Origin: Amoebophrya sp. A120 | Lineage: Eukaryota > Protista > Dinoflagellata | NCBI GenBank assembly: GCA_905178155.1 | Contig: CAJINV010000018.1 | Location: 1,276,190-1,340,189 of the forward strand | Reading direction: 5' to 3' | Length of the DNA: 64,000 nucleotides | Part shown: positions 2,110 through 22,807 of the stretch, one piece after another | Layout of the letters: every line of letters begins with the position of its first letter | How positions within the stretch are numbered: the stretch's first letter is position 1 | The notes under the pieces: model-generated | The model's input: the letters and a program-made list of their open reading frames with translations, nothing else | What the model was told of the DNA's origin: nothing | The model's database searches: none | Position numbers and translations under genes: made by a program

Positions 2110-2323
2110 GATTTATTTACGGGCAATCAATCTTTCCCGAACAAGATGGTGCTCCTGCGTCAGAACTGGTGAGAGCGAAGTTTTGCACCAGCCGTATTCG
2201 TCTTCGCCGGGCAGGCGGTGCCAGAAGACCGGCAGGAGAAGGGCGTCGAAACAGATTGTTTACAGCTACAAGTTCCCAGTTGCCAAAGGTGTAGTCCTCT
2301 GTGTGACAAATTTATTGGGACCA

Positions 2324-5300
2324 ATGGTTTCGAAGCTCGTATTCGTGACCTTCGGTATCGCCCGCTGGTGCCACCATTTTGTGCTGATCGACCAAGCTTC
2401 AGCGGTTTCTTCTTCGAACCACGGGAGAGATGGTCAAAAGGCAGCTTCGTCGGCGTTTCTCCGTCCACGAAGGGGGAACAACTACTACCCGCAGACAAAT
2501 TCGTTGAAGCGAAGACTCAGGGACCACCACGACGGGGAAGTACTACCAAGCGGCGAAAACAAGGGAGCTAGAATTACTAGTAGCTCCCGCCCTGCTGGTG
2601 CTGTTTCTGATGTTGAGACCGCTAGCACTTCTCTTACGGGGAGAAGCAATTTGCTGCAAAAGAGCCGCCGGAAAAACTCTCGGGACGAGAATTTTTTGCC
2701 TGCCGAGGGATCATGGAAGCGTAAAAATCTTCTTGGAGAAGGAAAAGACGATGTCATTGCAGCTGTCGAAGGTGGTGAAAAAACGGAACAAAGGATAGTA
2801 CCGCAAATGCTCGGGGAAGATGAAGATCCAGGGTTTCACTACGACGAAGAAACAGGAAATTCCTTTCTGCAGCGACAACGACTCACAAAGGCACACTGCG
2901 CAGGAGGAGGCCTAGAAGATGAAACAACAACCGCCGAAGGGCTGAGCGAAATCCCGGAGGAACAGCGGACCACCTCCGAGCATCCTGTGCGGAATGGTGG
3001 AAGCAACAACGCAGCTGTTACAGGGGACGACGGGAAGATGAGCAACAGTAAAGATATGCTGAATACCGCGATGAACAAAAATTTTCGTACGACAGCTGTT
3101 TTAAGTTCCGCCGCGGATTCCATACCGAGTGATAAGAATCTTTTTCAGCTTCAAGAAAGGCAGCTAGCCTTTTTTTCGACGGATCATGCTGGGGGAATAG
3201 CAGGAAATGGCGATTTACCACAACCCGGTGGCGCGCCGTCAATTTACGAAAATTATGGCATGATAAGCCCCGCCAGTATTTCCGTCGGCGAAATAAGTAA
3301 AACTCCATCGACGATAATCCCTAGTGGAGTTCTTTCTTCCTCCCCCGGACATCAACAGCCAACCGCATTGGGTCTCGTATTGAGCAACGAGATTCTGCAA
3401 AAGTCCGCCAGCGGCGGATTTCTCGGCGCGTCCCTGGGAGCGCAGTTCAATCGACTGCGGGATACCTACCACCGGCAGCAGGGCCGGTGCCCGGGCGGCG
3501 CCGCGCCGGCAAGCGACTGGTGGGAGGCGGCGAGCGAGTTGACCTGCGCCCGGCAGTGCATACTGGACGACTTGTGCGCTGGGTACGAGGTCGAGCACAT
3601 GTACAAGTTCGAAATCAAGATGGAAGAGAGAATAACGGAAGATGATGATGAAAATCCTAGGGGTCTCGGCGACGACAAAGAAGTTGATCTTGCATCATCG
3701 ACAAGAAAATCCTCCCCCACCCTGGTCCGCGATTTGGATTTCGTTTTGTGCCGCTTCGTCCGGCTGGTGTGGCCGGGTATGGAATTTACTTTTCCTACGC
3801 ATTTAACGCGGACTGGGAAATCAAACATTGTCTGCGGGGTGAAGAAGTTATCCCTGCTACGGTGGGAACGCGAGGAGATGTTTTCGGTAAGGGAAGCTGA
3901 TGGGGGAAAACCGAGCAGCGGTCCTCAGCAACAATCGGAGGAGGTATCAACTGCAAATACGTCTTGGTTGCCTTTGAAACAACAGTGTGGACGTTTATCA
4001 TGCAGATTTTGTAGGACCACCCACGATTATGTGTGGGATTTTTGTGATGACTAATGCCCAGTTTCGTTTGATGCTCGAAGATGAAAAATACCCTCTCCGC
4101 GTAGCAAAAACTGGCTCGCTTTTGCTCTGTATGCAAGAGTACAGATTTTTGTATGATCCAAAACCAAAACAAACGCACATCACAACTTGGCACTCTGCTT
4201 CCAGAGGACCACCCCCCAGACGCATTTGCACTGCATAGGAGGAAAAGAAACAGCAAAGTAGCACTGCCTTTTCCGACATGGACTTTGCGAGATGGGAGCA
4301 GGACGAGGAAGAAGTACAAACTGAAAATGATACCGAGGCAACATCAGATACCAGCATCACAGAAGACCAACAGGGGGACAAGGATGGGACGACCAATGCG
4401 CCGTCCGACGTTGACGAAAATGTTGAGACAGGTGCGGAAATAAATCGAGAAATAGAAGGCAACGATTTCGCCAGGACGCAGGCGCCTACCATGGACGATG
4501 CTGACCAAGGGCCCGACCAAGATCTGCTTAGCACAGAACACACCCGGCCGGTTGTGCAGCCACCCCCCGCGCTATTCGACTCTCTGCCAAATATCGGTAT
4601 GGACCGTGCAAAAGTAAAATATCGCTGGAAAAGTCTGATTTGTGCACCAGCAGACGATCTTTGCAAGCAACTTAGCGGAGTAGCAGACAGACGCTGATTA
4701 AAGAACTACGTTTATGATCACTATCCTATTCAAATTCAGCAGGACGACGAGGAAAATATCTTCACTCCGGATGAAAGTTTGTAATTGTATGTCCGTATGC
4801 ATCTATGAAAAATGAAAATCACTTTCATGTGTGCGATAAAAGTACTTTTGCACTCCATACCCTTCAAGCGGCCGCAAGCGTGCCTTGCGGCCTTTGGGAA
4901 CTGGACGCCGCTGGAATACGTGCCGGTCTATCAAATGTAAAAATGTCTGGGTCTGGAAGAATGCAAGATTTGTCATGCATATTTCTCATGACCCATGATG
5001 CCTGTAATGCATGCCCTAGCATCACAGGTTTTTTGCGGGATTCTTAATGCCCATTCCGCATGACAAATGCCCTCTCCGCGTAGCAAAAATTAGACTCTGT
5101 TTGCTGCTCATGCAACACAAATTTTTTAGTCATCGAAACGCAGCATCACAAGTTTAACAACAACAAACTCATGTAACTTATAGGGGCAGATACTTCAACA
5201 GTTTAGCAGTGTGCGGGGGGGTGACTCATGAGGTCCCCCCCCACCCGCTGTGCCCATATCAAAAAACACACAGGGAAACTCGTTTTTTCTTTTCTTTCGT

Positions 5301-8300
5301 ACAGCAAGGGGATAGCATGGGTCGTAAGTCGTTTAAGGGGGAAAAAGATGCCTAAGGACTGCAGTAGAAAGAGGTAATTTTGAGATAGAGATTACAAAGT
5401 AGACGATATAGAAACATTAGTAAAACTGTAGTGAAGAGTAAAGTGGTGGTTTCGATTTTTTCTTTTTTCTCGCTTGTATACATATGTAGACACTAAGTAA
5501 TGAAGTAAGAAAGAAAAAAGAACAGATATGGGCGCAGAAGTGGATCAGGAGGACCAGGGAGGGCAGGTGAAGGTGGGACTACGAGCAAGAATTTGGAACG
5601 AGAGCTTGCAGAACGACGCCGAGCTAGAGGATGCGCTGTGCCGACACCTGGAAGAAAAACGAGACATCGGGGACCTGCTCTGTGTGTGCAAGTGGTGCTA
5701 CCGGGTAAACATGGCGAGGGAGGTCACGCACAAGCACGCAAAAACGAAGCACAACAGCCACCAGCTAACCTGCCCGGAAAGAGATCGAGATGGAGACGCA
5801 GGCACGACTTCGGATAAAAAGGTACTGGCAGAAAATGTTTTTAGAGTGGTAAGTGTAGCAAGCACAACAGAGCCACTAACTACAACGAAAAATACGAAGT
5901 CAAAAATTATGGAGACTGACATTTTTTGTGACGAAGTGAAGCCGCGCATGGTGGACATAGACTGGCTGAACAAGCCAAAAAGAGACCAAATGATTGCCCC
6001 ACACGGGAACAAGGGAGTGTTCGCGTGTGGGCTCTGCCAGGTCTGTAATGCTGACTCCTGCGATTTTATTGACAGGCATACGCACACCTGTGTGCGTGAG
6101 TCGGCAAATTCCCGTGCAGCCTTAGCAGAGGGAAGAGCCCGCACACAATGCAGGCGCTGCAGCGCCCATGTTGCCTGTATGCGATCCCATATTTTGGCGC
6201 ATGAGGCCCTAGATAGGTATAGCTATCTTAGCTCGAGTAAGCACTACGAGCTAGGAACGCTAGCATGGGACCAAAAAGTAGCGCTTACAAATTGCATTCT
6301 TGATGAGCCACTATGGGGGCAGGCGGTATCCTCGTCGATGAATGTTCAGTCACTAAGAACAAAAAACGTCGACAGCTACATCTTGAAATATGTGGAAGAC
6401 ATTGAGCCGCATTTTCTGGGGCTGGATGAAACCAACCTTGACTCGATAGATAAGTCATGGCTGATTCACCAGCTTATTGCCCTGGGGTATCACATTATCT
6501 TCTGCCCACGGAAGCACGAGGGGGGTGATGCAAAAAAGAAGAGAAAAAGCGGGTCATCCATTTTGGCAGTTAGATCTAGTGTAAGGCTAGTGAAAATACT
6601 AGAAGTGGACGACGTCGATGGGTGCGAGATTATTCATGTCTTGGTGGAAATGAACAGCGTTGTATTTGAAGTCAAAAAGCTTTACGCCAAGCATGCAAAA
6701 CTAGACGCAACACACCTAGGGATAGGAGCGGGGATTATTATTGGGGACCTGAATGCAAGGCACTTGAACTGGGACTACAAAAACAACCCAAACGGAACAA
6801 CGCTGACAAAATGGCTAGAAGGGGAAGAGGGTAGGGGCTTCTGTTGCGCTAATGTGAAAGGGCAGGCAACGAGGGTACATGGTGAATGCGCAACAGCGCC
6901 AGACGTGATGGTTTTCGGCAAGGAGACTTTTGAAAAACCAAGGTTCGTAACGTACTTGCCATACAACTTTGACGCAATGGAAACGGAGACTAGCGATGGA
7001 AAACAAGCAACCCAAATCCTTGAAGGGGGAAAAGGAATAGCAGAAGAGAATGATGCGTGCTCAGAAGAACACCTGCGGAAGAAGAGAAAGACAAACATTG
7101 GAGCCGTTGACGCAGATACTAGTCAAGAGCAGAATAGTATTAGCCCAGAAGAGGCTGAACTAGAATGGGAAGGGGTTTTTGAGGTAAACAAGGAAAGAGC
7201 AGATGAACGTGCGTGCTACGTGCGAATCTCCAGTGAAGATGTAGCGGGGGTTGTTAAGAGCGGCGGTCTAATAGTTGACGGCGTCGCAGAAGGGGAGAGC
7301 CTATGGAGCTGGGGCCTGGAGAATTGCAAGTTTTCAGAACAGCTTTCTGATCACTGCATGGTGGAGCTCCGCCTGAGCATCAAAGGAGCGGTGGTTGCCT
7401 TGCCAGAAGTGGCAAGCATTTTTGTGCCGGAAGTAGACGAAGAAAGACACGCAATGCCAGCGGAGCTGGAGCAAGAAGTAGGTGGGGAATATGGGGATGA
7501 TGATCGGGATGAGCCGGGGGGGGGAGGGAGCGACTGCAACTACACCAGCAAGCTTTTGAAGTTCAAGTTTGAAAACGGAATACCAGTGAAGGAACAAACA
7601 TGGGTAACGGCGTACAATCGGGATCTTCGTGATAGACTTGCAGACCACCCCCTGATGCGGAAGAACTGGCAGAAGCGGAAAGTAGGGCTGATTCAAAACG
7701 ATCTGAAGCTGGTAAAGGAAGTAATGCTAGAGGTAGCAAAAGAGCATCTTCCCTGCTCGCGGGGAAGGAAGGCTACAGATGCTACTAGTGATGTAAAGGG
7801 AACACAAAAGCGGGCACGAAAGAAACCAAAAAAGGACGAGATAGGGCGGGGAAGGGATTCAGATGCAGAATTGGACCACCTACCACCAAAGGAAAGGTGG
7901 GAACACATCAACCAGAAAATACGAAGAAAGAAAATTTGGACCACCGGGGGTTTTCCCTCGAAGCTGGTCAAGCATGACAAAGCGGCCATCTACTTCAAGA
8001 GGGCAACTGGAGAAGATATCACGGAAAAAGGAAACCAGAGCGCTTTGCTGTGTCCACCGCTTACCCTGAAGGAGATAGAAAGACGAACGAACGAGGCAGC
8101 TATGAAAGAGATAAAGAAGCGGAAAATAACAGTAGAGCCACTTCCGGGCGAAGCAGTTGACGACCACGACGAAATAGTGAACTACTTCGCGGCCCAATAC
8201 AAAGGGAGACCGCAACAGGTCTACAGCAAGAACGGCTTTGAAGTGCCAGATGAGAGCGAGTGGAAAAAGAAAACCTTCAAAGATACGCGATTGAAGTCGC

Positions 8301-11300
8301 GCCAGAAAGCGAAGGAGGGGCAATTTTGGGAGTTGACCAGGACAGAGTTTGCGGCGGCTATCAGGAAGCTGGAATGTAACAAGAGTCCGGGGTGTGATGG
8401 GGTTACGCATGAGCTGGTCAAGGCTTTGGATGGGGTAGGATGGGAGTGCTTATTTAGGTGCTACTACGTGTTAGTCAAGCACAACGCATTTCCGGAAATA
8501 GGGCGGGAGATTATCCTAGCACCTGTAGGCAAGACAGAAGAGCAGGCTTTCTCAGAAAGTTTGTTTCGACCTGTAAGCTTGTTATCAGTATATGCTAAGG
8601 TGTGGGAAGCTATACAAGATAGAAGATTGTGCTTATGGTTAGAGGGCTACCAATGGAATGGAAAGAGCAGAATTGAAAATAGCAGCCCCAAGCTCCCGCT
8701 GTACTCCCTTGCATACAGAAAAAACTTTTGCAAAGAGTTTGGGGCTATTTCAATTCTCGAGTATCTGTTTTCAGAAGAAGGACTGAAAACAAAAGGCATG
8801 AGAAAATTTCTGCTGCTAAATGATAACGAAGCAGGTTTTGATGTGGTTTCACATGAGAAATTGCTGGAGACAATGCATGAGTTAGAAGTGCCGGAGGACA
8901 TAGCGGCAGCCACAGTGCAGTGGCTGAGTTACCGAACAGTTAGAATAAAAACAGGGAGCAGGTACTGGCATCTATCTCCGGGGATGCCGCAAGGCAGCCC
9001 CTACTCAGGGGGCTGCTTTAATGTACACAACACGCCACTAATTCAAACTATGGCGCAGCTGAATGAAGACGGCACACAGACGCAGTTTTCGGATGACAAC
9101 AGCCAATGCGGAACCGGTGACATGGAAGCAGTGACAAAACTCAAAAAGGATCTGGTGCGAACGGGCAGAAAGAAGTTCATATTTTTTGAAGAGACAAAGT
9201 CTGAAGCTGTTTTCTATGATGTTGGGGTGGATAAGAAGGTAGAAGTGAGCGAAGCAAGTAGGTCCTTGGGGTTTTTCTATGATGGCGCATGGGATTTCTC
9301 CTCCCACTATGAAATCATGCGAAAGAAGATGATCCAGGAGAACACAAGCGTAGCACGATTGAAAAACTTAAGACTCACCGCAAAAATCGACACCTATGTC
9401 TCGATAGTATACAGCGCGATACTATCGAATAGCATCCCGTTTTTTCACTATTTCAAAAAGCAGAACAGGCTGCAGATCAAGAAAGACACTGCGAAATTCC
9501 TGAAGGGGCATGCTATGCTACCCAAACAAACGCCAAACACGATTTTGCATCATTGTGCAGGAATTCCGGACATTCACACGCTCTTTGTAGTAGAAAACTT
9601 GATGCTCTTCTACAAAGGCGCGCAGTTGAAGCTATGGCCACGACAAAAAGAGCCATGCGAAGAGGTCAAGGCTATGTTCAGGCAGACAGATAGCAGCGAC
9701 CCAGCAAAATTCTTACTAGGCATGGACAAAAAGCATGCAACGTGGACAGATACCATTCGGCACATGGCAAAAACGGGCTTTCCTGATGTGCATAGTCATT
9801 TTGGTCATGAGAGACTGTAAATCGGCAAGATTTTTTGGCGGGGCGTAAATCTAGATGCGAAGTCCATGGACAGGGTTGGGACGGATATGGGCCTGGGGAG
9901 GCTGTCAGGTAAGCAGGGAAAAGAGCTGGACGAGGCACGGGGAAAGGTAGCACGGGCGCACAACGCACTAGTGCGGGGGCTAATACGGAAGTCCCAGGGG
10001 AATCTTGTCACGGCAACGGATGGACTGGTGGACAAAGAAAGAAATTTAGGAGTGGGGGCGGGGGCAAGTTGGTGGTGGGAGCCGGTTGGTGATGATGGGA
10101 CGGGGAAGCTTCGGGCAGAAGTGGGGGAGGACGAGTTACCAGATCCGATTTGGATCTCAGGAGCATATATACACTCACCGCTGAGTGATATTCCAACGGA
10201 TTCTTTTGATGCAGAGTGCATAGGGCTAATGCAGCAGCTTGAAAAGATAGAACGCCAAATCCTAACACACCCGCACTTGAGTAAAATGCTGAGGAACTTC
10301 TATTTTTTCTTAGATAGCAACTCCATAGTGCAGGCACTGGAGTGCTACAACGACGGTAGTAATGAGATGATCCACAAAATTATGAAGCAGATGGAAAAAC
10401 TAAAAGACGCATGCATTGGGGAGGGGCCGAACGAGGAGGAAGAGGTATGGTTTCACTTCCGTTGGACACCCGGACACGCGGGGCAGCTGGCGAACGATTG
10501 TGCGGACCTCCTAACGAATATCTACAAAGAAATGTGGAAAGACGGGCACCAGGACTTTTCGGACACAGCGGCGCGGCCGATCTACAAAAAAATGATCACT
10601 GCGCCGATCCTGCGGCGGCTTTTCCTGAAAAGGATCCTCGCGCAGAACATGGAAAATTGCCAATCCCCCTCGGAGTACTTGCGCGAGCGCGCGAAGTCTT
10701 TGGGGGGGTTCCGGCCGCCCGTGGGTGTCTTCCCGATACGCGAGGCGGAGTTGGTCTACTTCTGGGTGTGGTTGGGAATCGCCCCCCAGCCACACTTGGG
10801 GTGTGAGGAAATCGTTTATGAGGGAGGGAAAATGAAACAAAGGTGCAAAATGTGCAACAGGCTGTGCGACTGCGCAGTTGATCACGCCCTGTTTGAGTGC
10901 AGGAATGTAGAGGCGCCGCGCGCGCGCCATTTTGGCTTTAAGTTTTGCGCGCCCACCTTGGGGAGGGAACTGCTTCAAAATCCCAGAAAGATCTTGAAGT
11001 TCATAATAGACGAAGCGACAAATTTGACACATGAATATTTCCGAGACAGAATAGGTAGCTGCATCGAGCAAGTCGGGACGAAAATGGAAAAGGAAGTAAA
11101 AAAGCATGAAAAGCTACCAAATTCATATGTGAAGGCATGCAGCATGAGCAAGGCAAGAGTTTTTACAGATGAGATACCACTGAAATACTTACACTGACAC
11201 TAGAGCAATCTCATGAATCACAAAAACAAAAACTCACAGGTTTAAATATACGAAAAACATCTTTTTTTTCTTCTCCTTCATTAAGCAGTACATGTAAAAA

Positions 11301-14299
11301 GCAACGGAATATAACGAAAATCAAGCTGGCGCACGGAGCCGAGGAGAAAACAGCACGCGGGAAAATAGAAGTTGCCAGGTACTAATTATGAGCTTTTTGA
11401 TAAATAGAAATATGAAAAGTACATAAATACTTAGGAAGAGTAGATGTTGAAGAACGTGCAGGAAGGAATTCACGCGCTCGACCACACTAAGCGGCTATCT
11501 TCTCTTAGAAAGTAGGGCGGCAGGCTCCATTTTTCTGACACTTTGTTCGCGCGCCCAGCACGCCTTGTCCCCCTGCTACGAGGCGTTTTGGGCTTCGACG
11601 TTAGACCGAAGCGTACAGATATTGAATCAAAATTCTGTTTCTTGTACGGGCAGCCTGGTTCGCACCTGACTCCAGTCCCAAGAGAGAAAGGTAGTCGGGA
11701 CGGCGGGTGGCAGGCTTCGTTTACCTGGTACTTTGTTCGAGCGCCCTGCACGCCTGGTCCCGCTGCTACGAGGCTTTTTCAGCTACGACTTTAGACTGAA
11801 AAGTACAGACTTTGGCGAAAAAGTCTGTCTCTTGTGTGGGCCGCCTGGTTCGCGCCTGTATCTAGTTCCAAGTGTGAAAGGTAGTCGGAACGGAAGATCC
11901 GACGCCGACCTGCTTTCTCCCCAGGGTGGGGTGAAGGGAGGCCCGCGACAACCTCAACGGCGAGAAGTACGTGCACGCAGCCCACGCAGCGCCGACGCTG
12001 GCGCCCCCAGCCTATCTCGAGCACGATGAGCACGGAAGACGCGACCGGGGCCTACCCGCCGCGCGCGAATCTCCCGCTACCACACGGGAGGGTCGCCGGC
12101 ATGGACGACCGCCCAATTCGCCTGGTGCCCACAGAGCCCTGCAGGGCTGGGCGCGCCCTGGTACGCTCCTCTCGCGGCACAAGCTCCGGCGCCACCATGC
12201 CGCGCCGCGCGACGTAGCTGTCGGGGGCTTCTAACAGCTATCACGCGATCGAGTTACTGCTTCGGAAATCGGGGCCACAACAAAAGACAACGACACTGAC
12301 AGTGCGAGACTCCCGCACTAATGTGATTTACTACTTATTTAAATATCATGCGTGAACACCTCTACTTCAGCATCAAAATGAAAATTGAAAATGAATGCAA
12401 AAATCTCCTCCAGGTCCCTAACAGACGAGCGCAGCCCGCATGAGAAAACAGTAACTGGCTTCCCCTTCGACAGTCAGATCTTGGCGACTTCGAGGCTTAC
12501 GGCTGACACCCTAGAATAATTTGTACCAAACAGCCACGTAGCTTAAACTTGTACTTAGTGGGCATCGTCGTTGCTGAGTCCCCTGACGCAAAGAAGCAAG
12601 AAGATACTGTTTAAGACCTGGCATCTCTGTTGACCCTTTCTCCTCGGCTTCGTTTACGCAAAACAGCAATCGCATCGCGCAGTCGTAAAAACTCGTAAGC
12701 CATCGTACTGCTTTCGTTCTTCGTGAGTTGTTCTTGTTTTCACTTGGAAGAAAAATCAAAAAACACAAGCAGGGACAGGCTGAGAAAAGGAATAGAGTGG
12801 TAGGAGTAGAAGTTCTACATACTTGCGCATAGACAGATAGAGGAGATGGAAAATGATGAGTAATGATGTCTACCTTGGTTGTTATTTGTCTCTCGACATG
12901 CTGTTAAAGTTAAATGATCTGAGTAGTACTAGTTGTATAATTTTCTCCCAGCTGTAAGTCGTGTTAAGAAAATTCATTTTAGTAATCACTGGAAATTGAA
13001 TAAAACAAAATGAATAGCATCTTGGCGTCTTGTGCTTTTCTTCCGTTATATTGCTTGCTGCTAGCAGAAGAGGATGAGGATGCAGAGGGGATGGAGAACT
13101 GGCAGAAACAATTGGTGAGAGCACGAAATGGAAATGCCAGCTCCAGCATCGACATTGGATATAACCAGCGTGAAGGAAACGGAAACTGCAGCTGCGACGT
13201 ATCAAATAAAGGTAGGGCCAAAGGCCACGGGAACGCCAAACATAGCCGCGCTCTTCTTCGTGAAACGCCCACCGCTACTGGCGCGGTGGATATAAAAGAA
13301 AAATCAAAAGAAAAATCACGAGAAAAAGAAAAATCAAAAGAAAAATCAAAAGAAAAATCAAAAGAAAATCAAAAGAAAACCAAAAAAAAAATCAAAAGAA
13401 AATCCAAAGAAAATCCACGCGCTAGAAGCCTAGAAAAAAAAAAAAAACGCAGCATCACAAGTTGCATTCTTCCAGACCCAGACATTTTTGCATTTGATAC
13501 GGTCTGGAACGGAACCAAAGTGTGCCACGAGGACGGATTGCAGCGCGACCGCGGGCACCTGTCTTCCATACAGGCAAGCAGCGCGGAACACTGTCGCATG
13601 GCGTGCACCTACCAGGTGCGCAGCTGCGACGCCTGGGTGTGGCACGGCGGTGCGCAGGTTGGGGATCTGAAAAACTGCTGGCTGAAATCCGTGAAAAGAA
13701 CCAAACCGCCTGTACGACCCGCCTCGACGCTGGTCACCGGCGGTGTTTGCACGTACGAAGAGGCAGCTAGAGGTACTACCTCAGCCGGAAATACACCGGC
13801 AGCTGCCAAGTGGACGCTGACCCCCACCTGCTGCAACGGGTATCGGCTCGAGAAGCTGCAGGGCGTGTTTTCGCTGGACTACGTTTTACCGACGACAAGT
13901 TCAGCTTCTGGGCAACACGACAATACAAATGCAACATCTTCTTCTTCTTCTTCTCAAAAGCAAAAGTTCCGACAGTATTACGAAGATTGCCAACGGAAAG
14001 TTTTCGGCCCCCTGCTCGCGCGACCCAGCATGAATTTCACGACCGTTGTGCGTGGGAACGAGTGCGACAGCATTTTTTACAAGGACGGCCTGCCAATCTG
14101 CCCGGTGGAGACCAACTGGTTCAAGTTTTTCAACGATTTCCCCATCAAATTTGACAAAGCGCTGGAGATGAAACTGCGTCCTACCATTCCCTGGCTGAAC
14201 GAAACATCGAACAGCACAAGGGAACGGAAGCTGGGCGGGCATTACGACATTCCTAAGACCTGGCTCGCGGACAATTTTACCGAGGTGATTGTCGAATAG
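2324..14299 (+). CDS. Large Cys-rich, probably secreted protein with two PAN/Apple-like domains (paralog 1). Multi-exon; one intron is the introner carrying the LINE
   Basis: Exons ~2324-3943, 4239-~4612, (4743-4776), ~4879-4928, 13505-14299. Junctions give QQSEEEKKQ and ACLAAFGNWTPLEYVPVWNGTKVC, collinear with paralog 2 (CIQKYGNWSDLDFDWVWQNGTKQC). PAN-like motifs CARQCILDDLCAGYE and CRMAC...CDAWVW...CWLK. Confidence 0.75.
3945..4237. mobile_element. Introner, family A (degenerate)
   Basis: tatcaactgcaaat...atttgcactgcata; direct repeat GGAGG. Confidence 0.8.
5528..9820 (+). CDS. LINE polyprotein part 1: N-terminal Cys/His fingers, APE endonuclease, reverse transcriptase
   Basis: APE motifs GLDET, IIGDLNARH, APDVM, LSDH; RT motifs KSPGCDG, FRPVSLLSVYAK, AGFDVVSH, PQGSP, QFSDD. 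Confidence 0.93.
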   Translation: MGAEVDQEDQGGQVKVGLRARIWNESLQNDAELEDALCRHLEEKRDIGDLLCVCKWCYRVNMAREVTHKHAKTKHNSHQLTCPERDRDGDAGTTSDKKVLAENVFRVVSVASTTEPLTTTKNTKSKIMETDIFCDEVKPRMVDIDWLNKPKRDQMIAPHGNKGVFACGLCQVCNADSCDFIDRHTHTCVRESANSRAALAEGRARTQCRRCSAHVACMRSHILAHEALDRYSYLSSSKHYELGTLAWDQKVALTNCILDEPLWGQAVSSSMNVQSLRTKNVDSYILKYVEDIEPHFLGLDETNLDSIDKSWLIHQLIALGYHIIFCPRKHEGGDAKKKRKSGSSILAVRSSVRLVKILEVDDVDGCEIIHVLVEMNSVVFEVKKLYAKHAKLDATHLGIGAGIIIGDLNARHLNWDYKNNPNGTTLTKWLEGEEGRGFCCANVKGQATRVHGECATAPDVMVFGKETFEKPRFVTYLPYNFDAMETETSDGKQATQILEGGKGIAEENDACSEEHLRKKRKTNIGAVDADTSQEQNSISPEEAELEWEGVFEVNKERADERACYVRISSEDVAGVVKSGGLIVDGVAEGESLWSWGLENCKFSEQLSDHCMVELRLSIKGAVVALPEVASIFVPEVDEERHAMPAELEQEVGGEYGDDDRDEPGGGGSDCNYTSKLLKFKFENGIPVKEQTWVTAYNRDLRDRLADHPLMRKNWQKRKVGLIQNDLKLVKEVMLEVAKEHLPCSRGRKATDATSDVKGTQKRARKKPKKDEIGRGRDSDAELDHLPPKERWEHINQKIRRKKIWTTGGFPSKLVKHDKAAIYFKRATGEDITEKGNQSALLCPPLTLKEIERRTNEAAMKEIKKRKITVEPLPGEAVDDHDEIVNYFAAQYKGRPQQVYSKNGFEVPDESEWKKKTFKDTRLKSRQKAKEGQFWELTRTEFAAAIRKLECNKSPGCDGVTHELVKALDGVGWECLFRCYYVLVKHNAFPEIGREIILAPVGKTEEQAFSESLFRPVSLLSVYAKVWEAIQDRRLCLWLEGYQWNGKSRIENSSPKLPLYSLAYRKNFCKEFGAISILEYLFSEEGLKTKGMRKFLLLNDNEAGFDVVSHEKLLETMHELEVPEDIAAATVQWLSYRTVRIKTGSRYWHLSPGMPQGSPYSGGCFNVHNTPLIQTMAQLNEDGTQTQFSDDNSQCGTGDMEAVTKLKKDLVRTGRKKFIFFEETKSEAVFYDVGVDKKVEVSEASRSLGFFYDGAWDFSSHYEIMRKKMIQENTSVARLKNLRLTAKIDTYVSIVYSAILSNSIPFFHYFKKQNRLQIKKDTAKFLKGHAMLPKQTPNTILHHCAGIPDIHTLFVVENLMLFYKGAQLKLWPRQKEPCEEVKAMFRQTDSSDPAKFLLGMDKKHATWTDTIRHMAKTGFPDVHSHFGHERL
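9821..11197 (+). CDS. LINE polyprotein part 2 (same frame after a single TAA): RNase H and C-terminal CCHC finger
   Basis: TATDG, DAECIG, FLDSNS, WTPGHAGQLANDCAD; CKMC...HALFEC. Confidence 0.88.
   Translation: MGKIFWRGVNLDAKSMDRVGTDMGLGRLSGKQGKELDEARGKVARAHNALVRGLIRKSQGNLVTATDGLVDKERNLGVGAGASWWWEPVGDDGTGKLRAEVGEDELPDPIWISGAYIHSPLSDIPTDSFDAECIGLMQQLEKIERQILTHPHLSKMLRNFYFFLDSNSIVQALECYNDGSNEMIHKIMKQMEKLKDACIGEGPNEEEEVWFHFRWTPGHAGQLANDCADLLTNIYKEMWKDGHQDFSDTAARPIYKKMITAPILRRLFLKRILAQNMENCQSPSEYLRERAKSLGGFRPPVGVFPIREAELVYFWVWLGIAPQPHLGCEEIVYEGGKMKQRCKMCNRLCDCAVDHALFECRNVEAPRARHFGFKFCAPTLGRELLQNPRKILKFIIDEATNLTHEYFRDRIGSCIEQVGTKMEKEVKKHEKLPNSYVKACSMSKARVFTDEIPLKYLH
11541..11893. repeat. Diverged tandem duplication (~163-bp unit, 190-bp period) in the LINE 3' region
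   Basis: 11541-11703 vs 11731-11893 align without gaps from ctttgttcg to gtagtcgg(g/a)acgg. Confidence 0.85.
13293..13447 (+). repeat. (AAAAGAAAAATC)n array plus poly(A): LINE 3' terminus
   Basis: Repeated aaaagaaaaatc units followed by A14 abutting the TSD. Confidence 0.85.
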
Positions 14300-15199
14300 G
14301 TTCAGGTTGGGGAAAAATCAAGAAACGCTTCAAGAGTCTTCACAGTCTGGGCCATAATTCCATGCGTCTTTGAACGCTATGCTGTACTTTCCTTGCTGTA
14401 CTACCCCCTGATGGAATGTTAAGTACATGATTCAACAACTTCTACACATGTAAGTTTGAGACCTCGAAGAGGTTGACGCACTCAACTTCAGACGTCATCT
14501 CTATCTCAGTACTTTTCACTACGCACATTCATTCAACCGGGACGAGGCTAAGATTCCGCTTGTGTGAGGAACGTTTTCGGCCCGGTTCTCTTCGTCCTAA
14601 GTTCGTTGTTGAAATAATTGTTTCTGCGCATGAAGTAGTAGGCTGCGGAATCTTCTTTGCACTGGGGTGCATTGTACGGCCTTTGCTTTTTGCACATGTC
14701 GAGCACCACTTGTTTGGATCAAATTCGTAGAAATGAAGATCGTCGTCATCATCATCGTTGTCGTCGTATGCAGCAGTACGATGAAACGATAATCCGTTCA
14801 GCATCGCAAGAATTTTTGAACAGAAAAATCACCTTACTGCCCCACGTTTCGTCCAATTCGTGTCGTGTCGTGCTTAATTTGAAATTACATCAAGCGATGT
14901 TATTTCAATTGTCAAAATATTACGTTGCTGGTTGTATTGCTTTCAGCATCTATTTTTCCTGAATCACCGCAAGTTGAACGTAGTGCGCTCCAACAGTTCC
15001 AGACTCGAGTAGTAGGATTTTGAAAATTTTTCTGAAGACAAGCAGGTGGTTCTTGAAGTATCTTCTACCATTGTTTCTTGGACAGCTTTCTTACCCGCTC
15101 AGTAGACCACAACGAATCTCCTCCTCTACCCGCTAGACACGATATTCCATCTTCTTGAACCAGCCTTGTGTATTTCACTCGAAAAGAACGGCTGACCTG

Positions 15200-17776
15200 A
15201 TGTTGCACAAGTCCTTCAGCACGCGAGCAGCTCGGCTTTGCCTGCCCTTCCTGGAGTCAGCGCTGGCTAGTCGCAGAGATCAGGCTGATGTCGTTGCATC
15301 GGCTGGCTCCGCCTTCACGGAAGGAAGGGCTACCGGCGATGAACTGGAAGATGATGTGAGCGGTCTTCCAGGACGAGAACAAGAAGCAACTACAACGGAA
15401 CAAGATCTTCGAGAAGATCTTCCCAGTACCACCTTCCTCCTCCGCGGCCGCCGGGACAGCAGCACGCGGGCGTCACGCGTGCACCGCAGCAGTCTCGCTC
15501 TTTCTGAAGATGATCTAGTACTTCCTCGGGGTGGTCAGGTAGGGGAGGATATGATGGTCCCCCTCGAGGGCCGCGGGACAACCTTAGTCGTACAAGCAGA
15601 CGAAGATTCATCAACATCCGTGTCGGCTCTACCAGGGCAGCTGGGTGGAAGTTCCTTTCTACAACAGAAACAACGGAAAGAAGGCAGTTTTTCTTGCGGA
15701 TCGGACGACGAGACGGATGCAAAAACTTCTGCGTCCTCCGGCACACAAGCAGGGCAGGAGGAATTGTCCTTTGGGCCCGACGACGAGGGGCAAGAACTCC
15801 TCGGTGCGCCCGAAGGACCTCCCTCGTCCGACGACTATCGCATCTTCTCCCAGTACCTCGTGGAGAAGGGCCGCTGCGTGGGAAACTACGCCATCGCCTC
15901 GGACTGGTTCGCCGAGGCGTCCGAGCTGCACTGTGCGAAACGTTGCTCCGAACACGAATTGTGCTACGGCTACGAGGCGGAAAATGTACCGCAGGGGATC
16001 GAAGTTCTCGAAGAAGGAATGGCAAAACGGTATGCCGTTTTGTGCCGGTTCATTCAGTACACACCGACGGTGGTGAAGTGGGACTTTTCAGTTTCACCAA
16101 CATCATCCGATAGTAAAGCAAATTCTACGACCTCAACACCTACTTCGCACAACGAGAAGTCGAATCTCTCCTGCGGCGTGAAGAAAAAAGCCTTTGCGGT
16201 GGAGGAAAAATAGGCGAAGGTCAGGGCGGAAGAAGACCGGCAAAAAGAAGTGGAACGGATCGAGCTGCGAAAACAGGTCGCGGAGCTGACAAGCGAAATC
16301 GTGGACCCAGGGGAGATCACCGGGGACGATTTGTCGGCGGACTTTGATGCAGATTTTAAAGTTTCCGCGGAACCGGTACCGGAAGAGGAAGAGAAGGAAG
16401 AGGAGGATGACATCTTCAACCCGGAGGTGTGCATCCAAAAGTACGGAAACTGGAGCGACTTGGACTTTGACTGGGTACTATAATTGTTAGAAGGAGATTT
16501 TTTGAGTCTTTTTCTTCGATGATCTTTCTGTCACTTGTCTGATGCGAATTTCGTCCTGAATGGTGTAGTTCTAGTACTGCTCGGGGGTCTACGATGCAGC
16601 TGACATGACCGATTTGTAGAAGTCCACATCTGGCGGGAGGACGATGATGTTGGGGTTTTAGGATTTTGTGTCTGTTGTTCTGAATATACGCTGTTGCGTA
16701 TGATGTTGCCGCTGGTGGTCCACAACGCTAGCGAGCTGCTACCTCTCATCCACTCGGGAACTACACGTGTATGCTTTTTGAACAAGGTTTGATTCTTCTG
16801 CCGGATAGAAATTTTTGAGATTATTTTCCACAACCAAATGACTATTCAGGTTTGGCAGAACGGCACGAAGCAGTGCGATAACGACATGCTGGACCGGCCG
16901 TTCGGGGACGTTGGGATCGTGTGGCATTCGACCGCCAAAAGCTGCCGCCAGCGGTGTGAGCAGGACGCCCTGGAGTGCACTGCGTGGACCTGGATCGACC
17001 CGTCTTGGGCGCAATGGGAAACCGGGCGGCCCAACTGCTTTTTGAAGGACCGCGAGTTCACCAGCGCCCCCCAACTGCCCGACACCTGGGCCCTGACCGG
17101 CGGGAAGTGCGAGCCCGTGGGGGCAGGGGGGGTCTGGGACCTCCAGCGCACCTGCTGTGGCGGCTGGGCGTTCCAAAAGCTGGTGGACTTGCACACGGAC
17201 ATCGGCGGAGAAGAGCAGGAGCGGTGGGTTTTTGGGGACATGTACTACGACGACTACAAGGGGAAGTCGCTGCACATCACGCCACCGCCGCCAGACCCGG
17301 TTCTGACGCACAAGCGCCGACTGGAGGATGGTTATAAAAACGACCCAGCGGAAAATGAAAAATTCAAATTCTCAAAAAAGAAGAAAGAAAAGCAGTTTTT
17401 CGACCAGTGTGTAGAACAGGTGTTTCGCCCCTTGTTCCAGCAATACAAGAATCTCGGCAAAACCATTGTGCGGTTTGCGAAATGCAGCGAGCCGCACCGG
17501 TGCCCGCTGTCCCGCACGAACTCGCGGGACATTGTGACTCGGTTCCCGTACCAGGGGGGCACCAATCCGGACACCCGCATCAGGCAGGAAGATTTTCTTG
17601 GCCACCATTACAAATTTTCCGCCAATTCCAAGTGGACCCGGGCGTTCGCCATCCCCACGGCCCACCTAGAGGGCAACAACCCGCTGCGCAGTCGGAACTT
17701 TCCCCGGTACTCAAGGTGGTGGCAAGGGCGCTGGATGCGCGGAATGGCCGGGGGACCCGATGACGACGAGGTGTAG
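15200..17776 (+). CDS. PAN/Apple-like domain protein, paralog 2; in-frame TAG at 16211-16213 (possible pseudogene)
   Basis: SDWFAEASELHCAKRC matches paralog 1 SDWWEAASELTCARQC; frame continues past the TAG; GT-AG intron 16475-16849; second PAN-like CRQRC...CTAWTW...CFLK. Confidence 0.75.
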
Positions 17777-18503
17777 ATGAAGCGGGGTGGTAAACCTTGC
17801 TTGTGTAAGTGACTAAGCAAGAAGATTTTTGCGGTCGCAGCTTTCATTGCCATGTTCTTTCAGTGTTTCTACAATTTGAAGGTGTAGTTGCACTCGTTTT
17901 TGGAGTTTTTTTGCACTACTTTTGTACAAAACCCCAACTACTTCTACCCCATTCTGAGAACCTTTTGTTTTCCGCTTGGTAGTGGCCATGGCGCTACATC
18001 AGCGAACGCATGATCAAACAGCCTGTGGTTGAAATTTGCTTTGTTTCCCATTCCTCGTCATCTGCTACCCTGGTACTTTGACAAACGCGCATAAGATGGA
18101 AGAGCACCGCCACAGTGGGGAGCTTGCGTGCTTCTTGTAACCAACAGGAGGTGGCTTTTTGAGTGTTTATTTCCTTGTTCTCGCTGGAAGGACGGTGGCG
18201 TGATTGAGTCTTTTCCTGTTTCGGACAGTGGTAGAAGGACGAAGTGGGAAAGTAAAACAACCTGATAGTTCCGAAGATCTCTCATTGAGGTTTCGCCAAG
18301 GTTTGATGTTTCTGGATTGGGCAGCAGAAATGTCAAAAATTCAAATTCTTTGCGCCGGCTTGAAGCTGCACTTTTGGATCACCCTCTTTTTGTATCATCT
18401 CAGCGAATTTTTCATACCGGATAAGACGTCTTGCGATCTGTGTGTACTTCTAGTAGAGTTTTGCACGAAACAAAATCATTCAGAATTTTAGGTACAATCA
18501 AAA

Positions 18504-19436
18504 ATGGCAAGATCATCTTCGCGAACTACTCGCCTTCTCGGGCTCTCATCCCTCTGCGCACGGCTCCGCTACTGGTGGCGCTGCTCACTGGTTTTACCAT
18601 TCTGTGGTGCATTGTTATTCAGGAATCGGACCAGCATGACTCTCTTCGCTTTCGCCACGAGCAACGGGACGACCGGCACAGTAGTACCTGCGCCCACTCC
18701 CTCAGTAGCCAACCCGAACGCCCCCAATTGCGCGTTTGGCCGCACCGCCCATCTTCAACTGGGGAAGCGTGCCGTGCTGTGCGTGTTCCTCGGGCCGACC
18801 AGTGACACGAACCCCGCGCAGTCGGCGAAAAAATTGGTGTTTTCAGTGAAGGTCGACGAGTACTCGTCTCTCACGCTCTCCGGGGCCCAGGAATTGACAA
18901 ATGCCGTAGCGGAAAAAAACATCCCTGTTTACTCTTGGGTCGCCGCGGCGAACACGGGGACAAGCTTCGCAAAAAACTGCGGAGCTGGCACTCCAGACAC
19001 GACGAACGCAACGAGCGCAGCAGCAGAGCCGGCGAACAGCTACATTACATGTCCGCAGCTCTACCGGAACGGCCAGGGATTGTTAGTGCCTTTCGTGTCC
19101 CTGGTAATAAACATCGAGGACGGGAACATCAAATCTTTGGTCTTCGACAACATCTGTCCAAATTGTTCGGATAATCAATGCCTACCGTCCCAACAGCACC
19201 TCGATGCGGACTACGCGCCCGTCGGGTCTCCGAGATCCAGTTCGAAAACGTGCTCGCTGGAAACTGCAGTGTTGCAGCAGGCGCAAGATTTCAAGATTTT
19301 CGTCACCTGGGCGGGCACGGACAAAAACGGCCGACATTGCAAGTCAAGCGCCTTCCGGTTCTCCCGTTTTGCCGGCGCGACGCTGTCGGACATGTGGAGC
19401 TTCACGCAGGATAATTATCACTCGTCTTTTGGATAA
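18504..19436 (+). CDS. Hypothetical Cys-containing protein, possibly secreted, 310 aa
   Basis: Uninterrupted ORF with hydrophobic N-terminal segment and globular-looking C-terminus (FDNICPNC...KIFVTWAGTDKNG). Confidence 0.7.
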   Translation: MARSSSRTTRLLGLSSLCARLRYWWRCSLVLPFCGALLFRNRTSMTLFAFATSNGTTGTVVPAPTPSVANPNAPNCAFGRTAHLQLGKRAVLCVFLGPTSDTNPAQSAKKLVFSVKVDEYSSLTLSGAQELTNAVAEKNIPVYSWVAAANTGTSFAKNCGAGTPDTTNATSAAAEPANSYITCPQLYRNGQGLLVPFVSLVINIEDGNIKSLVFDNICPNCSDNQCLPSQQHLDADYAPVGSPRSSSKTCSLETAVLQQAQDFKIFVTWAGTDKNGRHCKSSAFRFSRFAGATLSDMWSFTQDNYHSSFG

Positions 19437-20514: not shown

Positions 20515-22807
20515 ATGGAGGAATTTCTGCAGAACACCTGTGGTATACCGAATCCACAGGCCGCGACAAGAGCTTCTTGCAGTACAACCGACCCGACGAT
20601 GAACCTAAATCATGGTGACGAAGTACTAGACTCGTCGCACCATGATCTCGTCAACATGGAGCTCGAGCGCACGCTGGCCCGGGACCGGTCCAATGCAGCG
20701 GTGACTAGCAAGTTGAAAGATCATAGCGCCGCAGCCAAAATGAAAAGCCAGGCTGGTGGTGGGCCGACGTCGTCAACGCTTGTTCCTGCAACTACAGGAG
20801 GTGTGTCTACTAGTAGTGGAAATATGTGCACCTCTAGCAGTAGCAGAAGTTCTGGCAAAAATAAACCTCCTCCGTCCCGACCGGATTCCGCAGCTTCGAG
20901 CTCTCGTGGGCGAAATAATCGGGAGAAGGACAATGCTGGTCCTGCTGATCAGCAACAGAAGTCGTGTTTTAACGTGACAAGAGATTTTAAATCGGTGGAG
21001 CACATGAAGAGGCAAGCGGAAGAGCTGAGACGCTTAGCGGATGAAGCAGTGGCGAGAGTGCAGGGGATGGACGGGTATGATAATTGCTTTTTTTGTGATG
21101 CTGTATTTACTTTGGAAGGATAGTCCACGACCGGTTCATTGCATGACAAATTTGTGTACATCTGAATCTGTAAAAACAACAAGGCGGCCTCCACCTGACC
21201 AAGACGTGCGGATTATATGGATTGTAAACATGTCTGGGTCTGGAAGGATGTGAACTTGTGATGCGCATTTCACAACACAGACAAATCTCTCACGCATAGG
21301 CAGCAAAAGACGTCCATTTCCTGTCACCAGAGTGGGGGATTTGTCATGCGGAGTAAGCAATGCGGAAGCTTCTCGAAATCTGTGATGCTAGGGCTTCCAG
21401 GACAGACATCCTGTGTCATGCAAAAACAGCAGGACTCTTCCAGACTCAGACATTTGTGCATTTGATAGATTAAGCGGCTGAGCAACATTTACGGAAACGC
21501 GATGAGCGGAAACAGTGGCTCAACGTCCTATCAAATGTAAAAATGTCTGGGTCTGGAAGATTCTGAGATTTGTGATGCATATTTTGTATGATCCATGATT
21601 CATGTAATGCATGCCCTAGCATCACAGATTTTTTGAGAGCTTCGCGATGCCTATTCCGCATGACAAATGCCCTCTCCGCGTAGCAAAAATTGCATTCCCT
21701 TTGCTGCTCATGCAATACAGATTTTTTTGGAATCCAAATTCAGCATCACAAGTTGCATTCTTCCAGACCCAGACATTTTTACATTTGATACGTCCGGAAA
21801 TAAAGCCAATAACCCAAAGCGCCCCGCGACCCCGTCCGGACTGGCCGCGAGGTCAACGTTTAACACAACCACCTTCACGACGACAGCACATAGTACGACT
21901 AACCAAGGCGGGTGTAGTAGCGGCGCTGGCGCTCCTTCGTCGTCCGGTGTAAAAATGGAGGTGTGTGGTGGCGGTAGTAGCAGCAGCTCTTCAACATCTT
22001 CTCCGGGAAAAATCAACAGCCAGGAACTTCTACACAATACAAATCATTCTCATGCGCAGTCTGGAGGGAGTAGTTCGAGTTCTACCTCCAACCCTCAGAA
22101 CAATTACGGATCTCGTGCGGTGAAGGACAATGAGCAGATGGCGCATTTTTTCACGAACATGCAGAAGGAGCTGGAGGAAAAGATTTCGAAATTGGAAGGC
22201 GAAAACCGCAAACTGAAGTCCCGAGTCGGCGCCATGCAGGCGGAGCGACAGGCGCTGCAGACTTCCGGCCAGCAGTCGGTGCGGACCATGCAAGTGCTGC
22301 AGGAGAGAGTCCAGGAAGGGGAGAAGAAATTGGCAGCGGAAAAAAAGAAGTGCGATGGTAAGAACAAAATAGGTCGTTGATTAGTAAAAAACCACTTTCT
22401 TTTATTATTTGGCATGGATAGTGCGTTCGTGCAGCTGTGTGTCTGAGAATTGTTTTTCATTGGTATACTAGTACTCATTTTTCGCACCGTGACAAATTCA
22501 TGGAATTATCCAAGGTCTGGAGCGGCGGTGTCGGTTGCTGGAGAATCGCGAAGCCGGTTTGCTTACCGAGCTACAAACCGCGTGCGAGGAGGTGGACAGC
22601 TTGTCTGCACGGGTCAGCGAAAGCAAAGACAGGGAGTCCACTAATTCCGTTGAAGTAGATCAGTACAAGCTGCAAAGCCACGCCCTGCAAAGCGACAACG
22701 CGCGGCTCCAGAAGACAGTAGCGATTTTGCGGGAAGAATTGGCGAGGAAGGAGCAGAGGATACAGAAATTTTTGCAGGGTGCTGGCGCAGGGGAAGCAGG
22801 GTCGTGA
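20515..22807 (+). CDS. Coiled-coil protein, multi-exon (start uncertain, may extend upstream)
   Basis: GT-AG intron 21075-21183 and introners 21216 and 21529 removed give DGRPPPDQDVRIKRLSNIYGNAMSGNSGSTSGNKANNPK; heptad-rich C-terminus. Confidence 0.65.
21216..21467. mobile_element. Introner family A, reverse orientation
   Basis: tatggattgtaaacatgtctggg...cagacatttgtgcatttgata; direct repeat GATTA. Confidence 0.88.
21529..21790. mobile_element. Introner family A (262 bp)
   Basis: Near-perfect ~30-bp TIR; direct repeat CGTCC. Confidence 0.93.

Follow-up and report, generated by a model that had tools for sequence, protein, structure and literature searches.

A LINE nested within an introner

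The window considered here, that is, the whole 64-kb stretch of Amoebophrya A120 DNA that was analysed, contains a LINE of 8,290 bp nested inside an introner, which is in turn an intron of a host gene. The nest is confirmed at the coordinates given below, all of which refer to the + strand. We consider it probable that this LINE belongs to a lineage that integrates into introners by motif-specific target-primed reverse transcription (TPRT), and that the composite can still be removed as one intron.

The introner belongs to a family with terminal inverted repeats (TIRs), family A. Its left part occupies 4929-5154 (226 bp, corresponding to positions 1-226 of a 262-bp element, with the left TIR at about 4929-4966), and its right part, which contains the right TIR, occupies 13464-13499 (36 bp); together they make up 262 bp. 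When the two parts are rejoined, the resulting element aligns end to end with intact copies, and without gaps at the join, at an identity of 87% to the copy at 21529-21790, 85% to 56353-56614, 84% to 25247-25507 and 83% to 44224-44485. Among the intact 262-bp copies named in the initial annotation, those at 21529, 44224 and 56353 are indeed full-length, but the alignment of the copy at 61869 covers positions 1-255 only. The TIRs pair at 37 of the first 38 nucleotides, forming inverted repeats at both ends of the intron, and the sequence CGGTC, found at 4924-4928 and again at 13500-13504, brackets the whole unit of introner and LINE as the 5-bp target-site duplication (TSD) of the introner. The other introner copies in the window each bear a different 5-bp TSD of their own. 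The family has more than 12 copies with such TSDs in the window, where many TIR families are present; a sister family yields 2,220 first-look candidates genome-wide.

The LINE occupies 5155-13444. It is flanked by identical stretches of introner sequence at 5136-5154 and 13445-13463, in which the 12-nt target motif, GCATCACAAGTT, occupies 5143-5154 and 13452-13463, respectively, and its 3' end is marked by a run of 14 A's at 13434-13447. This duplication had been reported as 19 bp long; the repeat is present, but its length is ambiguous (16-19 bp), because the adjoining A's blur its edge. Taken together, the introner halves of 226 and 36 bp, the CGGTC flanks, the LINE TSD and the poly(A) bear out the proposed nest.

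Structure and coding capacity of the LINE

The initial annotation had described the insert as an 8.3-kb LINE. An element of that size is present, but the copy is 5'-truncated, its 5' end falling short of that of a second copy on contig C6 by 115 bp or more, and its long open reading frame (ORF) carries an in-frame stop. This ORF, of 1,430 aa (5528-9820), contains a Cys/His-rich N-terminus, then a putative APE-type endonuclease (about aa 270-463), and farther on a reverse transcriptase, of which aa 1084-1229 match Pfam; its last codon is an in-frame TAA (9818-9820), a position at which relatives encode Tyr or His. A further ORF of 443 aa follows in the same frame (9866-11197) and is conserved in relatives. 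By eye only, motifs like those of RNase H can be made out in it, as can a Cys/His knuckle at the C-terminus; the ORF has no match in Pfam or PDB, and its AlphaFold model is of low confidence (mean pLDDT 46). A 190-bp tandem duplication lies in the 3' UTR (11515-11893), and the LINE ends in a conserved 3' module (13196-13444), common to short non-autonomous relatives, that includes a simple repeat (13294-13413) and the poly(A) from 13434.

The reverse transcriptase domain exceeds its Pfam cut-off (PF00078, RVT_1; 32.7 bits against 29.6). The candidate endonuclease N-terminal to it matches PF03372 (E 0.003) and PF14529 (E 0.001), both below the curated cut-offs, and Pfam gave no support for reading the Cys/His-rich N-terminus as a zinc finger. 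The nearest Atlas clusters of the LINE protein are all Exo_endo_phos+RVT_1 (score 0.96), a generic APE-RT arrangement, the similarity found in PDB, to human L1 ORF2p, is weak (E~1e-3), and a word search recovered one relative, the reverse transcriptase protein P0001, at 72% identity. Hallmarks of a LINE are found here: a 3' poly(A), a flanking TSD, and 5'-truncated copies (L007/L009, L021, L030 and the window copy itself). Judged from its sequence, 5155-13444 appears to be a very young, 5'-truncated copy from a low-copy lineage of APE-type non-LTR retrotransposons, the endonuclease being assigned from sub-threshold Pfam matches. In both the window copy and the C6 copy the in-frame TAA precedes the RNase H-like region, and the window copy has no 5' repeat region; on account of this stop and this missing region, the window copy may not be autonomous.

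A second insertion in a different introner family

The second copy of the LINE, at C6:2844784-2859549, is 100% identical to the window copy. Its host is an introner of a different family (approximately 251 bp, with the 5-bp TSD GGGTT), in which it occupies a site homologous to that of the window insertion, with the TSD (AAA)TACGCATTACAAGTTGCAT. The two nests differ in the internal sequence of the introner, in the LINE TSD, in the 5' end of the LINE, and in the 5-bp TSD. Because the introner family and the 5-bp TSD change from one nest to the other while the LINE itself is identical, the two copies stem from separate retrotransposition events.

It had been suggested that the introner transposase could in principle move the composite. 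If introner and LINE travelled as a unit, such movement might have yielded both copies, and the intactness of both TIRs and of the 5-bp TSD around the 8.6-kb unit would fit this account. The differences between the two nests argue strongly against it, however, and the sole duplicated composite in hand (L018/L019) has identical flanks, and is therefore a segmental duplication. Because the two LINE copies sit in distinct introner families, the suggestion is unsupported, and we find this origin scarcely credible. For the C6 copy in particular, 3' transduction and composite transposition were both ruled out, given that the host introner and the TSDs differ.

Insertion-site specificity

Copies of the LINE lineage and of its short non-autonomous relatives were collected by homology alone, and not by the presence of any motif. 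In all 13 of the readable 3' junctions, the sequence GCAT-N-ACAA-N-TT starts 2-5 nt after the poly(A), and in a fourteenth copy (L030) the motif is visible at the 5' junction. Across the readable junctions, the motif does not vary at positions 1-3, 6-8 and 11. The TSD consists of about 5 nt plus the 12-nt motif, and perfect TSDs of 17-19 bp are found in L010, L011, L012 and L020. The motif usually lies directly inside a TIR, and for this reason both TIRs outlast the insertion. Motif copies distant from any TIR are used too (L009, L011, L020), and motif sites are found in unrelated TIR families. Independent insertions have occurred in several introner families.

These nests might be supposed to reflect nothing but the abundance of introners, into which a LINE with the loose A/T preference of ordinary APE LINEs would often land by chance. 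Introners are certainly very numerous, as the candidate count for a single family attests, and the 64-kb window holds 80 matches to a loose form of the motif. This frequency, of 6.25e-4 per strand position in an introner-rich window, nevertheless corresponds to an expectation of only about 0.0025 per site, whereas the motif stands at a fixed offset in 13 of 13 junctions found by homology. Moreover, the sites span motif copies far from TIRs as well as unrelated TIR families, and the length of the TSD is constant. A genome-wide pattern search points in the same direction: 32 distinct sites combine a run of ten or more A's with the motif, compared to 9 when the motif is reverse-complemented and none when the pattern is read backwards. 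We regard chance landing as highly improbable. The genome-wide sites include several other retroelement 3' ends, together with poly(A)-only insertions whose motif is duplicated. As a negative control, the C6 copy itself contains the insertion of an unrelated LINE, whose 12-bp TSD lacks the motif.

Every copy with a readable junction, then, lies at one target with a fixed geometry, as a site-specific LINE would. A preference for the subterminal ...gcatcacaagtt sequence of introners, raised in the initial annotation, is strongly supported by these junction sequences, that is, by the motif at 13 of 13 3' junctions and one 5' junction, and by the identical C6 copy at a homologous site.

The mechanism that we favour would run as follows. 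The LINE lineage and its non-autonomous partners would integrate by TPRT beside GCAT-N-ACAA-N-TT, with a bottom-strand nick some 5 nt upstream of the motif and a top-strand nick at or just beyond its 3' end; nicks staggered in this way would produce TSDs of 17-19 bp. The motif is a recurrent internal and subterminal repeat of the TIR introner elements of A120, where it may serve transposase binding, splicing or some other function; these introners are MITE-like elements with 5-bp TSDs that are excised from mRNA as mostly non-GT-AG introns. Insertion at the motif would spare both TIRs and the 5-bp direct repeats, leaving a composite that could be removed as one 8,576-nt intron. We infer that the motif is read by the LINE's own endonuclease, possibly together with the Cys/His-rich N-terminus, and that the LINE-bearing allele is itself spliced efficiently.

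The specificity could instead originate in the biology of the introners, if a transposase breaks or nicks the DNA at the motif, or at structure-prone TIR DNA, and such breaks are captured by endonuclease-independent retrotransposition. In many families the motif adjoins the TIR, the expected binding place of a transposase, and there are insertions that consist of poly(A) only. But the TSDs keep to a regular 17-19 bp, and both cuts fall at a fixed distance from the motif, which is typical of endonuclease-dependent TPRT; motif copies remote from any TIR serve as targets too; the unrelated LINE ignores the motif; and no transposase is reported for A120 in PMC7789003. We therefore judge this account quite unlikely, and prefer a LINE endonuclease that recognises the motif.

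The host gene and its splicing

Searching for homologs of the large ORF on the upstream side retrieved an A120 protein, P0002 (1012 aa, 100% identity), which maps to exons at 2123-3943, 4242-4596, 4864-4928 and 13505-14296. The first three of these (spanning 2123-4928) are the upstream exons of a PAN-domain gene, separated by two further TIR-type introns; the last, which encodes the PAN domain, extends to the stop codon (13505-14299). It had been predicted that removal of the unit would rejoin ...EYVP-VWNGTK..., and this is what P0002 contains: it reads ...LEYVPVWNGTK... across the unit, joining 4928 to 13505 (EYVPV|WNGTK), so that the published model treats 4929-13504 as a single non-canonical intron of 8,576 nt. 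A tandem paralog 1 kb downstream, reading ...DLDFDWV / QVWQNGTKQC..., is collinear with the host gene. Conventional GT-AG splicing was considered as well; no register of CGGTC yields GT..AG, and the internal GT/AG pairs tried by eye break the frame. Excision of the element together with one repeat, as in P0002, is therefore preferred.

The gene models of A120 derive from BLAT alignments of assembled transcripts, since non-canonical introns defeat ab initio predictors (PMC7789003). The LINE may be removed with the host intron by splicing, as the structure of the model would suggest, although the P0002 transcript could come from cells without the LINE. Among reads placed on 12900-18800, which covers the right junction only, none showed a spliced joint; X11-X13, which are raw RNA runs, contributed 0-4 reads. 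The reads of X4, which are only guessed to be RNA, form a contig at 13471-14580 that enters the right TIR by 29 nt, with no spliced loose end listed. Elsewhere, smaller composites (1,236 and 1,128 nt) interrupt the ...VMIT|G|DAVW... region of a P-type-ATPase-like gene and a gene for an MTR4-like helicase, with the frames preserved.

It is important to consider whether the composite is simply retained, in which case the PAN-domain gene would be dead or truncated and the published model would represent an empty allele or a minor transcript. The sparse reads, with no spliced joint seen and the X4 contig continuing into the right TIR, would agree with retention, and so would the sense orientation of a LINE that has its own poly(A) region. 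An insertion as recent as the 100%-identical copies imply may have left selection no time to act, and the paralog lies only 1 kb downstream. Against this, a transcript-based model from the assembly's own strain joins exons 8.6 kb apart exactly, at a non-canonical junction; the smaller composites are tolerated in conserved genes; and introns of up to 35 kb are known in A120 (Table 1 of PMC7789003). On balance a knock-out strikes us as rather unlikely, and removal of the composite remains the reading that we prefer. The earlier proposal of introners as a safe harbour thus gains indirect backing, from the exact joining of exons in the published model and from the in-frame composites elsewhere, but not from the few reads placed at the right junction, which contain no spliced joint.

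Comparison with known systems

The closest known analogue is Tx1L, cited in PMC1950540 as a site-specific APE LINE in the DNA transposon Tx1D of Xenopus laevis, forming 'composite transposable elements'. The likeness lies in APE-type non-LTR copies that all sit at one specific sequence within a multicopy TIR transposon, a target interpreted as one at which little damage is done. The sequence similarity of the A120 LINE to L1 ORF2p is only at the level of E~1e-3. The A120 target differs in that it is a 12-nt motif common to several TIR families, with TSDs of 17-19 bp, and in that the target transposon is itself an intron in coding sequence, so that the LINE may leave the mRNA by splicing.

Other LINEs, namely R1, R2, TRAS/SART, NeSL/CRE/SLACS and Utopia, are specific for rDNA, telomeric repeats, or spliced-leader or snRNA genes (PMC4640811, PMC5035012, PMC1919474). 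They share with the A120 LINE a stringent specificity for a redundant multicopy target, a fixed cleavage geometry, and the logic of a 'safe haven' (PMC6719617). Their targets, however, are multicopy RNA genes or repeats of the host, rather than a mobile intron, and many of them use a restriction-like endonuclease, whereas the A120 LINE has a putative APE-like domain.

The introners of Amoebophrya A25 and A120 have been described as repeated families of introns that end in inverted repeats, with 3-5-nt direct repeats spanning the exon/intron borders, and with borders other than GT-AG (Farhat et al. 2021, PMC7789003), and the window introner, with its inverted repeats, 5-bp direct repeats and membership in a repeated family, fits that description. 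Retroelements that target introners are described neither there nor in Gozashti et al. 2025 (PMC12130899). The latter reports 'introners attributed to non-LTR and LTR retrotransposons' in A120, as well as TIR-flanked elements with homology to retrotransposons; nests like the one in the window may account for some of these retrotransposon-type introners. The nonconventional introns of euglenids and the MITE-derived non-canonical introns of Fritillaria (PMC11282704) resemble the A120 introners in lacking GT-AG borders, in having ends that can pair, and in their suspected transposon origin. They belong to different lineages, and a resident site-specific LINE is unreported for them in the literature compared.

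Implications

The known targets of site-specific LINEs are rDNA, telomeres, small-RNA genes and a single DNA transposon, Tx1D. Mobile introns, if a LINE lineage does read a motif in them, would represent a new kind of safe haven. If the element is spliced out, then a retroelement would be tolerable in the middle of a gene, even an essential one, and its cost would stay low, since the host would excise it along with the intron. There is also a caution to be drawn, in that 'introner families' classed as retrotransposon-derived in A120 may in fact consist of nests, and not of retroelements that give rise to introns.

A broader reading, which we offer tentatively and think possible at best, is that A120 harbours a guild of retroelements specialised on the 12-nt introner motif, comprising one autonomous LINE lineage or more, a number of SINE-like partners that differ at their 3' ends, and aborted insertions of poly(A) only. 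For such a guild, introners would serve both as splice-protected landing pads within genes and as a transcription unit for promoter-less copies, and the nests would explain the 'retrotransposon-type introners' as well as the TIR-flanked elements resembling retrotransposons that have been reported for A120. The LINE RNA of the promoter-less window copy would then be supplied within the host pre-mRNA or the excised intron. A defined 12-nt element common to unrelated introner families is now in hand, and the composites make the non-canonical splicing of Amoebophrya testable anew, through the size of the loop tolerated between paired TIRs.

A LINE inside an introner

A TIR element spans positions 4929-13499, with the direct repeat CGGTC on both sides (4924-4928 and 13500-13504), and its left and right TIRs agree at 37 of the 38 outermost nucleotides. 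Its introner sequence lies in two parts, of 226 bp (4929-5154) and 36 bp (13464-13499), which sum to 262 bp; when rejoined, they align end to end, gapless at the join and at 83-87% identity, with intact copies at 21529, 56353, 25247 and 44224. Weaker relatives occur at about ten more places within the window, and the 5-bp direct repeat differs from one introner copy to the next. Between the two parts lies a poly(A) LINE, probably of APE type, of 8,290 bp (5155-13444) that ends in a 14-nt A-run. Its target-site duplication (TSD) consists of introner sequence (5136-5154, identical to 13445-13463) and measures 16-19 bp, depending on the count of adjoining A's. The nest that the initial annotation described, including a TSD of introner sequence and a poly(A) tail, is real.

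The nest as an intron in the deposited model of the host gene

With the large upstream ORF as query, a protein search identified P0002 ('unnamed protein product [Amoebophrya sp. A120]', 1,012 aa) at 100% identity. Its exons map exactly to 2123-3943, 4242-4596, 4864-4928 and 13505-14296, the last of which encodes a PAN domain. Therefore, 4929-13504 is one intron in the deposited model, 8,576 nt long and bordered by TA..TC. Across the composite P0002 reads ...LEYVPVWNGTK..., and a tandem paralog, ...DLDFDWV / QVWQNGTKQC..., is collinear with the host gene; both agree with the earlier proposal that removal of the unit rejoins EYVP to VWNGTK.

The remaining two introns of the gene are TIR elements too. 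The one at 3944-4241 carries the 5-bp repeat GGAGG and has a GT..AG register by chance, and the one at 4597-4863 is GT..CT in the published model. The CGGTC repeat of the nest offers no GT..AG register, and thus the nest requires the non-canonical removal that, according to PMC7789003, applies to roughly two thirds of the introns of A120.

Is the composite spliced out?

Reads were aligned to the right junction region, 12900-18800. The species' three raw RNA runs had almost no reads there. A further run, X4, which is RNA only by guess, gave a contig at 13471-14580 that reaches into the right TIR by 29 nt, and none of the loose ends listed for 12900-18800 was spliced. In the same run, a contig of the LINE 3' UTR (12900-13273) differs from the window at two bases and has a word depth of 86; the depth is 15 over the host exon (13471-14580), and much of 14673-16840 has no coverage. 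The pattern resembles coverage by transcripts in which the LINE tail outnumbers the host exon, in a run whose nature is only guessed.

The gene models of A120 were derived from assembled transcripts aligned by BLAT, as its non-canonical introns defeat tools that rely on canonical sites (PMC7789003), and the exact TA..TC junction of P0002 across 8.6 kb is hard to obtain except from transcripts. According to the same paper, the longest introns of A120 reach 35 kb. The transcript in question could have derived from an empty allele. Two smaller composites elsewhere preserve the reading frame of their genes: one of 1,236 nt splits the ...VMIT|G|DAVW... region of a P-type-ATPase-like gene, and one of 1,128 nt separates the Helicase_C domain of an MTR4-like helicase gene from the MTR4 stalk and beta-barrel domains that follow. 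We consider it probable that the filled, LINE-bearing allele is itself spliced, and splice protection of the LINE by the introner is plausible. The suggestion that the LINE is spliced out, and that introners offer it a safe harbour, thus draws indirect support from the P0002 join and the in-frame smaller composites, but not from the reads at the right junction, among which there was no spliced joint.

Other copies in the genome

A search of all 115,520,608 bases of the genome found one further, 100% identical LINE copy on contig C6, together with a few relatives that are 70-73% identical and short elements in which only ~140 bp of the 5' end and ~250 bp of the 3' end of the LINE remain. These short elements, which span 882-1,122 bp from TSD to TSD in the four that were measured, are non-autonomous derivatives. 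At its 5' end the C6 copy is 115 bp longer, the extra sequence consisting of AAGCACTTCGT-type repeats that occur in the non-autonomous elements as well; therefore, the window copy is 5'-truncated. Full-length elements (5' ends of the non-autonomous elements L011, L012 and L020, and L003:1386-1500) open with a variable head, after which come AAGCACTTCGT tandem repeats and a G8/C8 hairpin module. The head contains further target-like motif copies, and could be a 5' transduction from a source introner or a promoter region.

The C6 copy is split by an unrelated 6.5-kb LINE with a 12-bp TSD (AAGGTGTGGGAA), a 407-aa ORF1, a 1,366-aa APE-RT ORF2 and an (AGTC)n tail. The locus C6:2844433-2859620 (L003/L056/L002) is thus nested at three levels: a family-B introner, the identical LINE, and the unrelated LINE.

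Target-site specificity

The introner that hosts the C6 copy belongs to a different family (family B, ~251 bp, here with the 5-bp repeat GGGTT), which has thousands of candidates genome-wide. Its insertion position is homologous to that in the window, and the TSD is (AAA)TACGCATTACAAGTTGCAT. We assembled a junction set from every locus with the LINE 3' module (13 loci) and two found via the 5' module. In all 13 readable 3' junctions, GCA(T/G)-N-ACA(A/G)-N-T begins 2-5 nt after the poly(A), with positions 1-3, 6-8 and 11 invariant; a 14th, 5'-truncated copy (L030) has the motif at its 5' junction. Copies readable at both ends show perfect TSDs of 17-19 bp, comprising ~5 nt and the 12-nt motif; the TSD of one 5'-truncated copy measures 13 bp. 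In the 64-kb window there are 80 matches to the loose motif, ~70 times the number expected from base composition. Because this amounts to only 6.25e-4 per strand position, 13 of 13 junctions is far beyond chance.

The pattern of A10+, a 2-7-nt spacer and the motif was found at 32 distinct sites genome-wide, versus 9 with the motif reverse-complemented and 0 in a control with the pattern read backwards. At the additional sites lie the 3' ends of several other retroelements, and some of these sites hold a poly(A)-only insertion at which the motif is duplicated. The unrelated C6 LINE did not use the motif at its insertion.

The targets belong to several TIR families: A and B, which start TATCAAATG..., one with a ...CCCCTCCCCATATC... 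TIR, one with a GTAAAAACGT... TIR, and two more. The motif lies directly inside the TIR in most cases, and in some the target is an internal copy of it. From the junctions, TSDs and genome-wide pattern we therefore find support for the postulated endonuclease preference for subterminal ...gcatcacaagtt, with a refinement: mapping the copies, as had been suggested, places them in several TIR families, not family A alone, and the LINE lineage is site-specific for a motif common to several introner families.

Motifs of the GCAT-N-ACAA type also stand at or just inside the TIRs of unrelated-looking families (window 24707-24877, 32893-33078, 57506-57654, 59229-59551, and others), where they might serve the introners in transposase binding, splicing or another role. 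At least four other groups of poly(A) elements, differing in their 3' ends, lie at the motif (L058/L075/L094/L059; L060/L076/L097/L070; L087/L091/L095; L061/L064/L029), and the A-run of L091 is ~90 nt. Five poly(A)-only or near-empty insertions (L088, C6:4498835; L089, C6:4567703; L093, C7:884520; L098, C14:59492; L099, C15:891155) have an A-run of 10-15 between two motif-bearing copies of sequence, as if target-primed reverse transcription had aborted at this same target.

Movement as a unit

The initial annotation allowed that the introner transposase might move the composite. This has no support: the introners that hold the two identical LINEs differ, and so do the TSDs. One composite alone is duplicated (L018/L019, C2:2386523 and C2:2376372), in two copies ~10 kb apart with identical flanks, which therefore indicate local segmental duplication, not transposition.

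Comparison with known systems

Stringent LINEs with a redundant target as a safe haven are well known (R1/R2, TRAS, Utopia), and Xenopus Tx1L has a single insertion site within the DNA transposon Tx1D (PMC1950540, PMC6719617). Tx1L in Tx1D is the closest analogue of the A120 lineage. Here, however, the target transposon is an intron inside coding sequence, and several TIR families have one motif in common. Farhat et al. 2021 (PMC7789003) described introner elements but not introner-targeting retroelements. Gozashti et al. 2025 (PMC12130899) described A120 'introners' that they ascribed to non-LTR and LTR retrotransposons, as well as TIR-flanked elements showing retrotransposon homology; nests like that at 4929-13499 may account for some of these.

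Coding capacity of the LINE

An ORF of 1,430 aa (5528-9820) contains a reverse transcriptase that exceeds its Pfam cut-off, and its matches to an APE-type endonuclease stay below threshold. This ORF is weakly similar to L1 ORF2p, and the Atlas clusters closest to it are APE+RT. The same frame holds a second ORF, 443 aa long (9866-11197). By eye, its region has RNase H-like and Cys/His motifs, an assignment that Pfam, PDB and a low-confidence AlphaFold model did not confirm. Three diverged relatives read straight through the TAA at 9818-9820, with Tyr or His in its place; therefore, there was originally one long ORF, now interrupted. The same in-frame TAA occurs in both identical copies (window and C6): the source may already have had it, the copies may have been produced in trans, or translation may read through the stop. 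The 3' UTR contains a 190-bp tandem duplication and a (AAAAGAAAAATC)n array.
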